Below are positions 6,323 to 62,129 of a stretch of DNA of 64,000 nt, in pieces. The stretch comes from Octopus bimaculoides (Eukaryota). Under the pieces are notes generated by a model, which was not told the DNA's origin, searched no databases, and was given only the letters and a program-made list of their open reading frames with translations. The first letter of the stretch is position 1, and each line of letters starts with the position of its first letter. The position numbers were made by a program, and so were the translations under genes. The stretch spans positions 53,263,186 through 53,327,185 of the forward strand of contig NC_068998.1 in assembly GCF_001194135.2 (NCBI RefSeq), read 5' to 3'.

Positions 6323-6981
6323 GAGCCAACGTGAAATTTTGGCTTAAACTTAGGAGTGTATTGAGCATGCTTCGGCAAGTATACGCGACGAGGCAATGGG
6401 TCGTACGCACTATTTCGACTGTCACATGTTCTTCAAAAGCAGAAAAACGTTCCTGGAAGTCTATGACTGCTCTGGAAGACGTGCCACGAGCGTTAACCAC
6501 AGAAATATAGTATTGTTCATCGAGAATTCGTCTCCCAGAGCCAGACAGTCAATCAAGAGTTCTACATAGTTTGAAGCCTTTGATGGATGACATTCGGCGA
6601 AAGCAACCGGATCTATAGAGTGCAAAGAAGACTTGGATTCCTTACCGAAATCTCCTCATTCACGCGGTTTTCGCCAAAATCAAAATGTTGTTGTTTCCGC
6701 AACCACTATTGTGGCCGGATTTAGCAACGGCGGACTTTTATCTCTTCCATCATAAAAATCCATCTCAAAGGTCGCCGTTTTAACACCATTGTTGTGCTCC
6801 ACTTCTAATTGCTGAAAGTCATCGAGTCACTTACGGAAAACGACTTCCAGGCCGGACTCCCAAACTGACAGAATCGCTACGCAAGAAGACTTTTTCGAAG
6901 GAAATGATTTTAAAACTTAGGTAAATGTGTTATTTTTTATTAAACAGAACTAGTCCGTGAGCCCTTTGATACCATCTTGTA
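6323..6981 (+). mobile_element. Mariner element lacking its 5' end: decayed, internally deleted transposase plus 3' TIR
   Basis: Translates to RANVKFWLKL...LSMLRQVY-DEAMGRTHYFDCH (N-terminal HTH region), KMLLFPQPLLWPDLATADFYL (similar to PYSPDLAPADF), LKGRRFNTI, LTENDFQAG and FFEG. The reverse complement of 6944-6981 matches 61912-61949 at 28 of 38 positions without gaps, and the element ends in TA. Confidence 0.9.
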
Positions 6982-7710
6982 AACTTTGTACTTACTCATT
7001 TTCTTTTAATAATGTATGGTGAAATTCGAGGGTTCTTTGCAATTTTCATAATGTTGATCCACCACGACATTGTAAGAGTAGATATTCCACCGTTGACTTA
7101 AAGTGTTAATATGCATAAGTTATTATTACTATTTCAGAAATTTGAAATGAGTATAATTTCTGACCAAGGAAGTTGAAAACATATGCAATTTCCTTCAAAG
7201 GCTAACGAGTGTCAGTTGCGTAGATAATGTCTGACATACTGGTCGAATGTGAAATAAATGTCTCAGGAATCGAATATATAGTCAATGCTTCAGGTAAGCA
7301 AAGGGTCATATATGACGTGGGTGTAATTAATATGTTGGCAATTTCTATCTCATAAATTTTATGTGAAGGTTTATATAAAATTGGCAAAGAGGTGGCAGAA
7401 CTATGCGAGTGATTAACACAAGAATGTGTCAGTACATGAGTACTTATATATGCATAGTTTTCACAAACCAATGCTTCTAAAGGAATATATATATAAAGAT
7501 AAGATTACATGATATTCACGATAGCATCTTTTTGGCATTAATAATAAACAGCATGCAGAGTTGAATATGAACGATATTACTCATACTAGTTAGCACTGAT
7601 TTGAATATGTCGGCGTGTGTGGCAGACAACTCTTGTTTGTTTGTTTATAATGTCCTGATTATTCTACTACCATTATCCTCCATCTTGTTTCACATTTACT
7701 TCTTACTCTG

Positions 7711-7862
7711 GTATATATATATATATATATATATATGTGTGTGTGTGTGTGTGTGTGTGTGTGTGTGTGTGTGTGTGTGTGTGNNNNNNNNNNTATATAT
7801 ATGTGTGTGTGTGTGTGTGTGTGTGTGTGTGTGTGTGTGTGTGTGTGTGTGTGTGTGTGTGT
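7711..7862. repeat. (TA)n(TG)n microsatellite with a 10-N gap
   Basis: Directly visible in the sequence. Confidence 0.95.
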
Positions 7863-10800
7863 CTGTATGGATGGATGTATGTACGTACGTATGTATGCAT
7901 GTATGTATTATACAACTAATATTTGGTATTGTCAAATCCAGTCTAAAATTGCTCAATGGTTACACCTAGTTTACTTTTGTTCGTGCCTTGTACATGAATT
8001 GGTGAAATGGCACATGGTTTCGCTATCTTTCACCGGCGCCCATACAGATGATACCAGACAACGTGTTGTGCCCTCGACTTTGACCCTGCAGACTATAAGA
8101 ATTTGCTAGGTGGAGGGAAATGGGTAGAAGCACCAATGTGGGAACTCAAGTATAGCTGGGCAAACGGGAACAGGTAAAATGAATATAGATTCAGACAGGT
8201 TTAACGCATTCTTTCATTCAAGAAGTCCGTCCAAAAATTTGATTGTACTGGAACTAAGGTAACAAATACATTTCCAGCTTTTGCTTGCATTAAAGATTTA
8301 AGCATTTGCCTAGTATTGAACATACGGAACTTACATTTGATAATAATTATATTATAAACTTATTCATTTAGTTACACCGAACAACATGAATTACAGGCAA
8401 GTTTTGTGCCTATATTTTTTTTTTCACTATATATCTATAAATACACACACACACACACACACACACACACACACACATATATATATATATATATATATAT
8501 ATATACACTTACATACGTAAATAGATAGATCCATATATATATGCATTTAAAGCGATATACGATTATGTAAGGAGATACGCATATGACAATGCATTCCCAT
8601 AATTAAAAAAGACATCTCTATGACTATCTGGATAAGCAATGAAAGGATTCCATGTGCGTTTCTCTATCGATTCATTCAAAACCCATATAATGTATAATTA
8701 TATAATTAGCTTAATCGCGTATTTATTCTATTAGATGTTATATGAATGACTGTGCATGTATTTATCAAACATAGAATCTATTGGCGACGACAATACAAAA
8801 CGTATATCAGATTTAATCTTATTTTAATCGATCTTTTATTCTGTACCCCCCCCCACATACACAAACACACACACATGCACATATGTACATACCCAAACAA
8901 CCAAACATGCACTTGCATATGAATATATAAACAGATAGATAGATAGATAGATAGATGTAAATAGTTACTCAAATATCTTTAAACACGCGCGTTTAAAATA
9001 TACCCAGAGTATATTATAGAAGAATTTCGTGATGATATGCAAATAAGAAAACTGTTAAAGAAACTTATTACATTTACCGGTAAAAAAAATACGACCAAAT
9101 GCCTATTTGATGACGGGTATCTGGTATCTGTCAGCTTTAATAAATAATCATATCCGGGCATATGAAAATATATGCAGGTTCATGGCAAACATCGACGAAA
9201 AAGATTTGTCACACTCACACACACATATTTACACCATATATGTATATAAATTGCTTCAAGTAAGACATTGGATGTTGCACAAACAATCAACTCGGAGTGA
9301 AACATTTCCTCAAGCAGAAACTGCTGTAAGCTACTGAAATTCATTGCGTAAATCTTGGTCTTTTGTCAATCAATTAATCAGACACACACACACATATTTA
9401 TCGATATATATCTTACTTCCATGCCATAAGTACTTGAGCAAACCCACTATTGTTGTTCTCGCTACTTATTTATATTTTACGTTTGTTACATTAACTGCGT
9501 TATAATAACAAAACAAAAAAAAACACTCACCTGCGCTTTTGGCATTCCTTGTACTTTTCAGCCATAATTCAATGCCCAAACAGGCCAGCATTTCTTTGAT
9601 GCCAAACCAACTTGCGGAAATATTTTCACTGCTTATTTTCTCTTTATTTTCTTACATAGGATTTTGTTTTATTATATTTCAGCCAGACTATCGTCTCCTG
9701 AAACATCAAGTGTTTCGACTCTTATTTTCTTATCTCAAAGAATTAACAAACAGCACAGGTCAAGTAATTTATTTGCTACAGTATGAAAGTTTATTATCAT
9801 TTAGTGGAGTTGGTAAAGGATGTGCTCTGCATACAGATAGAATGTAAATCCCTGCAACACAACACCGTCTCTTGTGAGGAAATCGTTAAATAATTACGCT
9901 TCTATTACTTCCAATAAAATGCAAATGAACTCTTTATTGGCAGTAAACGGTTCACTCAATTGAAATAAGATGTAAATAAAGTATCTATTTCCTAAGCTCT
10001 GTGACAATCGTATTTCCAAAGGATTTAAAGCATTGCTTATTCTATTTGTCTCAATATAGTGTTTAGAAATTCCCATTCAGGTGAATATTAATATTAATAG
10101 CATCGCATATTAAACATTTTCAAAATTGTTCAGTATGTAAACCCTTTCCCTCTCAATACTCATAAACATCAATTCTGTTAAACAAACCGCTCAAAACTAC
10201 AACGCATTTATAAAAACATATAAACTTTCAGATTAATCTTGAAATTTAAATCTGCTTTGGTTATCATTATGAGTGAGTGCACAATGTTTGTCATTTGTGT
10301 TTTGTATGTTTCAGAAAACGGTTCATGCTTCATTTTGCAGTCAGAGGAATCTAATAAGGACTAGCATGCTTTCAGAGGATTTCGACTTTTGCCGTTTTTA
10401 CAAAAAAAAGAAGCATTTAAGTAAAAAGGTTTAAACTGGGGACTTAAAATTTCAGTGTTAGAAATGGTAAATAGAAAATATATGAAGTGAACTATTGCCA
10501 TGGCACATATTTTGAACATTTAGTTTTACTGTAATCGATGAGGACAGAATTTGTAGGGATCACGTAGCGAGGATATGGGAGTTGATAATAGAGTAATACC
10601 TAGAATTTTTTGGAAAATTCCTAATAATAGCTTCACGAAACTGCGAAGGAAGATTAGATTTAATTTGCCTCCCATAAGGAAAAATTAATCAAATGGTTTT
10701 ACTATTAGTTACCTTAGTTTTAGTGTAACTATCTTTGAAAGACATACATTTACCTTTAGAACGAAAATAGAGGATTAGATAAGGGTTATCTCCCTTCCTC

Positions 10801-61183: not shown

Positions 61184-61284
61184 TCTCTCTCTGTCTGTCT
61201 CTCTCTGTTTCTCTCTCTCTCTCTCTCTCTCTCTCTCTCTCTCTCTCTCTCTCTCTCTCTCTCTCTCTCTCTCTCTCTCTCTCT
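61184..61284. repeat. (TC)n microsatellite
   Basis: Directly visible in the sequence. Confidence 0.95.
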
Positions 61285-61911
61285 AACGTGATTTAATTTG
61301 TTTTTCTTGGTATTTCATGCTTTTCTTGTAAGAAGTTATGATTCAACTAAAACTAAATCAAGTATAATATTAGTTTCTAGAATGGGTGAATGACGAGTAA
61401 TACGAAATAATTTCTCACTGAACCAAGACTTCAACCTGGTTGAAGTCATTTCACTTCATACACGCAACATATACGATTGAGAAATATATGAAAAGCAGAA
61501 TATTTTATTTCCTGACACTATGAAACATGTCATCATGTGACAAATAATAGCGAAAAATTTAATAATATGAAATGATATTTAATTAACTCTACCATACACG
61601 TTGATAATCTGAAGCAATATAGTTTACAGTACAATGCATGACATAGATTATAATTGGATTAACGAATTACAAAAGTTTGATAATTTAGAAAATATTACAG
61701 CTGTAAATGCTTTGAAAAAGAAAAAAAAAGAAACATTGCTCTTTATTGTAAATTTAATTTCTTGCTTTAAAAATGTATAATAAATAATTTATGACGTTCA
61801 TTGAAGTGACTTCAGTTAAAACTGTGAACGTATTTTATTCAATTAACCGGTTTAAACAGCAAAAGTAATCTCTCTTCAATCAAGCATGTGACTTCAAAAC
61901 ATAGAAGTATG

Positions 61912-62129
61912 CACGAGGTAGTATCAAAATGTTCCAGGAATAGTTCTGTAGCGCGCCGACAGATGGTACTACACGATTGCGTGCGTAGTGAGGGCTAGCA
62001 GTGACCTTCATGAGGCAATGTGCCGAAGGACATTACTGTGTTTCATTTGCAAGTTGTAAAATTTATGTTTTTATGATCAAATCTATCCTGTACTCTGCGA
62101 TTTTGTTATGGACAGGAAGTTGGAGCAAA
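61912..62129 (+). mobile_element. Mariner 5' end: TIR, 5' UTR and the first codons of transposase (MDRKLEQ)
   Basis: 61912-61949 matches the 3' TIR at 6944-6981 (28 of 38 positions, inverted). An ATG at 62108 reads MDRKLEQ, the typical mariner start before RANVKF, and similarity then stops abruptly. Confidence 0.82.

Follow-up and report, generated by a model that had tools for sequence, protein, structure and literature searches.

Two complementary fragments of a dead mariner derivative in permuted order, 56 kb apart in an octopus scaffold

A dead mariner-type element is present in the window, the whole 64-kb stretch of Octopus bimaculoides DNA analysed here, as two fragments which lie 56 kb apart and are complementary to the exact base. 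Both pieces are on the + strand, and in the scaffold the 3' piece stands upstream of the 5' piece. The two halves probably derive from what was once a single copy, a point that we infer from their fit. The explanation that we favour, tentatively and at somewhat less than even confidence, is a single break of one old mariner element, with the permuted order produced via a circle or a block swap and the scaffold order true.

Background

Extensive reshuffling has been reported for the genomes of coleoid cephalopods. To our knowledge, circle-mediated events are documented in primates and cattle and not in cephalopods. A permuted block, if real, would belong to a known class of rearrangement. Chicote et al. 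(2020) described human segmental duplications and translocations via circles, and cited the KIT translocations of cattle colour-sidedness (PMC7450558). In the human rearrangements mediated by circular DNA, the order A-B/C-D is flipped to B-A/D-C over sizes of 22-3,918 kb, and the junctions, mostly within interspersed repeats, have 0-2 bp of homology (PMC7450558). For the published cases, comparison of paralogues and outgroups gave the locus in its ancestral state, the junction at which the circle had closed and the acceptor site while still empty (PMC7450558).

Results

The two pieces and their fit

The pieces and their internal ends are located as follows.

61912..62129, + strand: 5' piece of the mariner derivative, with inverted repeat, 196-nt leader, ATG at 62108 and the first 22 coding bases
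6323..6981, + strand: 3' piece of the mariner derivative, with the remaining degenerate transposase frame and the 3' inverted repeat
62129..62130, + strand: breakpoint from the 5' piece to the unrelated flank Y (which starts ACTGCTAGATAATT), blunt, with 0 shared bases; the family alignment stops here
6322..6323, + strand: breakpoint from the unrelated flank X (which ends AAATGTGTTTAT) to the 3' piece, blunt, with 0 shared bases; the family alignment begins here

In the 5' piece, the ATG is followed by GAC AGG AAG TTG GAG CAA A, where the piece ends abruptly, and the 3' piece opens with GA GCC AAC GTG AAA TTT. Joining 62129 to 6323 produces the in-frame MDRKLEQRANVKFWLKL. The break point, with ...GAGCAAA on one side and GAGCCAAC... 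on the other, lies seven codons inside what used to be the transposase frame, and an element without the break would read ...GAGCAAAGAGCC... across the join. Neither in the sequence nor in the family alignment was there a gap, overlap, target-site duplication or shared base at either mariner junction, and the local repeats and palindromes found at the breakpoints were only short chance matches. Both junctions are inside contigs (6322/6323 in 5241-7783 and 62129/62130 in 47249-64000), and N-gaps reach neither the pieces nor the junctions. With the scaffold as given, the inverted repeats, which are the outer ends of both halves, face one another across about 55 kb.

Further copies of either piece were absent from the 64-kb window by blastn, and a tblastn search of the window with nine related transposases gave a sole match at 6325-6883; by these searches, 61912-62129 and 6323-6981 are the only two fragments of this mariner family in the 64 kb.

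Comparison with relatives

The reference for the family was L007, an uninterrupted copy from a public run, whose source is an antisense ORF found by an exhaustive search of representative sequences and which was used as its reverse complement. By blastn against it, the 5' piece covers the bases up to 167 and the 3' piece those from 168 on, and in a global alignment the last base of the one and the first base of the other occupy the adjacent columns 218/219. L007 reads GGAACAAAGAGCCGATG across the join, with no extra base. The halves are likewise colinear, with the same abutment, in four more distant full-length relatives (L001, L004, L005 and L006). The abutment in frame without gap or overlap, together with the shared + strand and the upstream position of the 3' half, had been read in a preliminary description of this DNA; the sequence and the 167|168 boundary in L007 confirm the first, and the coordinates and letters the others.

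That description also named features which would speak against a single cut. One was extra family bases between CAAA and GAGCC, and neither L007 nor the full-length relatives contain any. Another was a difference in age, and the identities in the global alignment with L007, 74.1% for the 5' piece (bases 1-167) and 69.1% for the 3' piece (bases 168-880), are not clearly different. As for a difference in subfamily, both halves have the inner inverted-repeat motif TAGTTCTG, which is absent from the more distant relatives. The N-terminus put forward as usual for mariner, EQR..(V/I)KF, recurs as E-Q-R-x-x-[I/V/L]-[K/R]-F with the same spacing in 106 of 120 related transposases.

Nature of the element

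At about 880 bp, the element is a mariner derivative that is old, internally deleted and non-autonomous; the joined pieces measure 877 bp, against about 1,345-1,410 bp in full-length relatives. Its landmarks are listed below.

61912..61949, + strand: 5' terminal inverted repeat, 38 nt, aligning with the inverted repeats of L001, L004-L006 and L007
6944..6981, + strand: 3' terminal inverted repeat, with TA at 6980-6981
6505..6510, + strand: site of the family-wide internal deletion, where about 394 nt equivalent to L004 positions 465-858 are missing, including most of the catalytic core

The deletion, which also took the region of the HDNAP motif, is common to the window copy and L007 and is therefore a family trait. 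Additional small deletions, frameshifts and stops are present in the 3' piece, and there is no intact catalytic triad, the core region being deleted and the frame holding stops and frameshifts. The earlier view of complementary halves of one copy stands as regards the exact abutment, but the 3' piece, from which about 394 nt of the core have been lost, falls short of a full half. The stitched translation aligns with a 355-aa transposase (P0001), whose domains are PF17906 and PF01359 (HTH_48 and Transposase_1), at 42% identity (E = 5.9e-29); the best protein relatives reach 42% at most, and among the matches with a source name none is from octopus. Pfam gave no match on the element's own translation. 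Judged from its letters, the element is dead and non-autonomous, unable to encode a transposase and without a function of its own.

In an alignment counted by hand, 28 of the 38 positions of the 5' inverted repeat (61912..61949) match the reverse complement of 6944-6981, the same count as first reported. The target-site TA is present at 6980-6981. At the 5' position the letters (61912-61913) are CA and not TA; a single base change in an old copy would account for this, and a two-base duplicate cannot link the halves. The element shares with mariner-like elements (Tc1/mariner) inverted repeats starting (TA)CGAGGT..ATCAAAA, like those of L001 and L004-L006, a TA at its 3' end and a frame that opens M..LEQRAN[I/V]KF. 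It differs from them in the deleted core, the frameshifts, the stops and the lack of a Pfam match, and in being physically split.

Flanks, interval and scaffold gaps

The surroundings of the two pieces comprise the following stretches, for which no strand is assigned.

5241..6322: flank X, unrelated unique DNA at the internal end of the 3' piece, not similar to any of Y, L and R
62130..64000: flank Y, unrelated unique DNA at the internal end of the 5' piece, according to the similarity comparison of flanks
6982..61911: interval between the outer ends (flank R to flank L), 54,930 positions in nine contig stretches with eight N-gaps
7784..7793: first gap right of the 3' piece, with (TA)n(TG)n on both sides in the same orientation

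Flank L, left of the 5' piece, ends ...AGAAGTATG, and flank R, right of the 3' piece, begins AACTTTGTAC...; X joined directly to Y would read ...CCAAATGTGTTTAT|ACTGCTAGATAATT... Comparison of the flanks revealed no repeat that connects X with Y or L with R, and reading frames across X|Y and L|R, the joins supposed for the ancestral state, gave nothing above chance. Eleven ORFs of the window, two across a breakpoint and the rest in the pieces and their flanks, had no exact entry in the public protein and contig collection. The end of X and the start of Y had no exact match among metagenome contigs, nor had a degenerate pattern of the family junction among contigs of viral and prokaryotic genomes, collections that do not include this genome.

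The eight N-gaps between the halves hold 1,891 N in all. A count of six leaves out 39095-39114 and 47104-47248. Given these gaps, the length and order of the interval are only estimated. The contigs range from 0.75 to 16.8 kb; contig 5241-7783, which starts with a 29-nt fold-back at 5241-5320, has one further N-gap just to its left. Nearly all gaps fall in (TA)n/(TG)n tracts, and such tracts occur throughout the window. The matching (TA)n(TG)n at 7784..7793 is compatible with one unclosed microsatellite, and thus with true adjacency; similar microsatellites stand at most gaps.

Discussion

According to the favoured explanation, a mariner derivative of about 880 bp would have been broken once, between two adjacent bases, and both broken ends would have been joined bluntly to unrelated DNA. 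The segment carrying the intact element would have existed as, or been copied from, a circle, which would have opened inside the mariner and been inserted by end-joining at another site (X|Y). The same order would also result, without a circle, if two adjacent blocks had changed places through three breaks. The swapped order is the one expected from a circle opened in the element, with the scaffold order across the eight N-gaps taken at face value, and the point of opening would be resolved to the base because it falls within a recognisable dead mariner. We give rather low confidence to the possibility that a cephalopod segment of about 56 kb re-entered the chromosome from an extrachromosomal circle, either after passing through this form itself or as a copy made from it.

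Were the scaffold order true, the likeness to rearrangements mediated by circular DNA would include the flipped order of adjacent blocks; it also takes in a size within the 22-3,918 kb range, junctions which at 6322/6323 and 62129/62130 are blunt and without homology, and an opening point inside an interspersed repeat. The reversal with respect to the uninterrupted order of L007 is seen in the scaffold as given, across the eight N-gaps; what sets it apart from the known cases is that here the flip is read only from how the halves of a single transposon lie in a gapped scaffold. A single break with permuted order is supported by the abutment on L007 and four relatives, the same strand, the presence of only two fragments in 64 kb, the similar divergence of the halves, the blunt junctions inside contigs and the matching motif at the gap 7784..7793. 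Against it, the permuted order depends on eight joins that the scaffold makes across N-gaps, in an assembly that is fragmented, and neither a circle-closure junction nor a donor locus nor an empty acceptor site was seen. Such rearrangements are also rare, so either a modest assembly-error rate or a breakpoint shared among copies of an abundant family competes equally. The halves do not overlap, so nothing can prove that they were a single copy.

A mis-ordered scaffold is a serious rival, though we consider it rather unlikely. On this reading a long DNA stretch (Y...X) would have split the element without target-site duplication, giving the true order L - 5' half - Y ... X - 3' half - R, and mate-pair scaffolding would have put either contig 5241-7783 or a whole block of contigs on the wrong side. 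One biological event suffices for this, and the setting is favourable to error, with eight N-gaps between the halves and another left of contig 5241-7783, a contig of only 2.5 kb whose initial fold-back is of the kind that assembly errors typically leave at microsatellites, and with ubiquitous (TA)n/(TG)n tracts at the gaps that can mislead scaffolding. The misplacement, however, must cover at least 56 kb while keeping the strand, rotating the whole block takes two scaffolding errors, and the gap right of contig 5241-7783 has a matching microsatellite on both sides. The inserted DNA would also be unusual, being at least 3 kb long without target-site duplication, inverted or long terminal repeats, or a poly-A tail. 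Less probable still, in our judgement, is that the pieces are remnants of separate insertions of one abundant non-autonomous family which end at the same base by chance, at a breakage hot spot, or through a sub-family that carried an insert and was amplified and then truncated. Mariner is among the commoner DNA transposons in octopus genomes (PMC8967140). The deletion derivative has been copied at least twice with the same deletion, in the window copy and in L007, so the family was mobilised and may be numerous. Complementarity alone ties the halves together, and blastn and tblastn did not find the missing partner of either piece beside that piece. What tells against two independent copies is the base-exact complementarity on the same strand, expected for about 1 in 1,800 random fragment pairs by our estimate for an 880-bp element (1/880 for the base times 1/2 for the strand). 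Moreover, the 64 kb contain no third fragment of the family, L007, the one other family copy compared, is uninterrupted at the break position, and X and Y have no transposon termini.

Nested insertions and assembly cross-overs are the commonest origins of split transposons in draft assemblies, and that general expectation favours an ordinary nested insertion of a transposon or, where two assembly paths share a k-mer, a cross-over induced by the repeat. We nevertheless regard either as very improbable here. The arrangement resembles a nested insertion in that one element lies in two colinear parts, each joined to foreign DNA. A nested insertion predicts the order 5' then 3', a target-site duplication seen as an overlap, and insert termini, whereas in the window the order is swapped, there is no such duplication, and the foreign DNA lacks transposon termini; the absence of target-site duplication and terminal repeat argues against the simple nested insertion that the preliminary description had kept as an alternative. 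A cross-over requires a stretch common to both contigs at the junction, and there are 0 shared bases there.

If the scaffold order is real, the dead transposon is a built-in ruler, a base-exact mark of the opening and rejoining of a block of about 56 kb, and a genome-wide search for swapped transposon halves would be a cheap way to count such events. If the circle in particular were true, it would offer a concrete mechanism for part of the reshuffling of coleoid cephalopod genomes and would be, as far as we know, the first base-resolved circle-mediated movement of a segment in a mollusc. Should the order be an assembly artefact, the split element would still be a useful marker of a mis-ordered contig in the scaffold, but no more than that. 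In both cases the element itself is an ordinary mariner derivative, long dead.

Other features of the window

The heptamers GAGCAAA and GAGCCAA (6/7 match) were considered as a 7-bp target-site duplication and rejected, both being native to uninterrupted relatives. Scans of the window for tRNA genes and Rfam families returned no match, and the longest ORF of flank Y had none in Pfam. The only Pfam match among the flank ORFs was a weak helix-turn-helix, which belongs to an unrelated transposase remnant in the window.

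Pieces of a mariner-type element in the window

Two complementary parts of a mariner-type element are found on the same strand, each bordered at its inner end by unrelated DNA.

61912-62129 (+): mariner-type left end (5' piece), with a 38-nt inverted repeat, a 196-nt leader and ATG GAC AGG AAG TTG GAG CAA A
6323-6981 (+): mariner-type right part (3' piece), with GA GCC AAC GTG AAA TTT, a degenerate transposase frame, the right inverted repeat and TA

The 5' piece changes abruptly into flank Y, which begins ACTGCTAGATAATT, while flank X, which ends AAATGTGTTTAT, changes abruptly into the 3' piece. 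As the preliminary description had claimed, the two pieces join in frame, reading MDRKLEQRANVKFWLKL, and 28 of the 38 positions of their inverted repeats agree. The scaffold places the 3' half upstream of the 5' half, the outer ends facing each other. No further copy of either piece was found in the window by blastn, and a tblastn search of the window with nine related transposases matched 6325-6883 only.

Relatives were sought because the earlier reader had only assumed the family sequence. The stitched translation of the pieces led to P0001, a transposase of 355 aa (42% identity; PF17906 and PF01359), and a profile search retrieved 120 more, among which the expected mariner N-terminus, E-Q-R-x-x-[I/V/L]-[K/R]-F spaced as at the join, is present in 106. 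Aligned at the DNA level, four full-length relatives (L001, L004, L005 and L006) run over the join without indels, the sequence of L006 at this point being GAACAAAGAGCCAACATCAAG. The decisive relative emerged when the antisense ORF spanning the left junction was used as query in an exhaustive search; the best match, P0121, is encoded on two short public contigs, L007 and L008; in reverse complement, these contain an unbroken copy of the window element's own family. Identity to L007 is 74.1% (123/166) for the 5' piece and 69.1% (449/650) for the 3' piece. In this alignment the column in which the 5' piece ends is directly followed by the one in which the 3' piece starts, and in blastn the 5' piece stops at base 167 of L007 and the 3' piece begins at base 168; in the consensus, also judged from the full-length relatives, nothing thus separates CAAA from GAGCC. 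The motif TAGTTCTG of the inner repeat is common to both halves and absent from more distant relatives. On sequence grounds both halves are from one family, and their divergences from L007 are not clearly different. Overall, comparison with relatives upheld the earlier observation and made it sharper.

The element is an old, dead, non-autonomous mariner derivative of about 880 bp. Most of its catalytic core is deleted, as is the HDNAP region; it contains several frameshifts and stops, and a Pfam search with its own translation gave no match. An internal deletion of about 394 nt in the 3' piece (6323-6981) is also present in L007 (reverse complement, 1-880), an unrelated public contig in which the start codon is mutated (GTA GAC AGG). 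Since the window copy and L007 share this deletion, the derivative was mobilised at least twice, the ~880-bp family having moved after loss of the transposase core.

Junctions and assembly gaps

The halves do not overlap, and a target-site duplication is therefore absent. GAGCAAA and GAGCCAA, alike at 6/7 positions, were considered as a 7-bp target-site duplication at the break and rejected because both are native in uninterrupted relatives. X and Y have in common neither inverted nor direct terminal repeats, and a poly-A tail is missing, which leaves an ordinary nested transposon insertion unsupported. They are also unlike inverted-repeat ends, and the break site is not TA; considering known mariner biology, the break thus lacks the appearance of a cut made by the mariner transposase. 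A repeat-induced crossing of two assembly paths was also rejected, as it needs a junction stretch common to both contigs and the shared bases are zero.

The window is AT-rich, with abundant (TA)n/(TG)n microsatellites throughout, and consists of 11 contigs (0.75-16.8 kb each) linked across 10 N-gaps. Eight gaps (1,891 N) fall among the 54,930 positions between the outer ends of the pieces, rather than the six initially listed, the additions being 39095-39114 and 47104-47248. N-gaps touch neither piece, and both piece/flank junctions are contig-internal. Gap 7784-7793 is bordered on both sides by (TA)n(TG)n, the sole internal hint of true contig adjacency; tracts of that kind are found beside most window gaps. 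Immediately after an N-gap, contig 5241-7783 opens with a fold-back.

5241-5320: fold-back, arms 5241-5269 and 5292-5320 (29 nt, 93% complementary), with a (TA)n(CA)n core

This looks like an assembler artefact, a walk back out of a self-complementary microsatellite, and the left end is thus uninformative on the neighbouring contig. None of 11 window ORFs, two of which cross a breakpoint, is on record in the public collection, and exact-match scans of other collections (metagenome, viral and prokaryotic contigs), none of which includes this genome, gave no match.

Explanations for the swapped order

The two pieces were probably once a single copy. If so, and if the scaffold is correct, the block from X to Y would be an ancestral segment in circularly permuted form. 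Movement of segments through circular DNA flips A-B/C-D into B-A/D-C, with sizes of 22-3,918 kb and junctions which are blunt or have 1-2 bp homology, mostly within interspersed repeats (PMC7450558); given a single copy and a correct scaffold, this published signature is the picture seen in the window. A three-break swap of neighbouring blocks would yield an identical one. A real permutation costs one rare three-junction event and no added assumption, and we tentatively regard it as quite possible. The contigs may instead be mis-ordered in the scaffold, which seems rather doubtful, as two things would be needed: an insertion, itself unusual, of 3 kb or more that left no target-site duplication, and a shift over 56 kb or more that kept the strand.

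Independent copies with a common breakpoint are an unlikely source of the fit: for random pairs of fragments from an 880-bp element, the chance of a base-exact, same-strand match is roughly estimated at 1 in 1,800 per pair, and coincidence is competitive only with a very abundant family or a breakage hot spot. Octopus genomes have mariner elements among their more common DNA transposons (PMC8967140). These three surviving explanations are all rare events with comparable prior odds, weighed by rough estimate rather than computation, and everything else together is very improbable. The original interpretation, one copy split into permuted halves 56 kb apart, is only partly supported. A real permutation would be a fresh example within a known rearrangement class; otherwise, the pieces mark a mis-ordered contig.

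Other repeats in the window

A remnant of another transposase at 50696-51226 (-) includes a Tc1-like N-terminal helix-turn-helix region, with LSAAQREQAIGRFQAGQ and RRGRLRVTTSRQDRFI; in Pfam it matches HTH_23 alone, weakly (E = 4.7e-4) and under the curated cut-off. A short interspersed repeat family is represented in the window by six or more copies (77-83% mutual similarity), in which neither ARAGORN nor Rfam detected a tRNA-like part.

42806-43058 (+): short interspersed repeat
44329-44596 (-): short interspersed repeat
16417-16526 (-): short interspersed repeat
4453-4564 (-): short interspersed repeat
18399-18468 (-): short interspersed repeat
40597-40655 (-): short interspersed repeat

The ORF at 12599-12910 (+), which had no match in Pfam, carries ...EASMLRWMCNV...RLLCWFDHV..., which resembles the C terminus of reverse-transcriptase proteins of LINEs. 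A long AAT/ATT-type simple repeat occupies 54854-55381; the ORFs it yields (137-147 aa, poly-Asn and poly-Ile) are artefactual.
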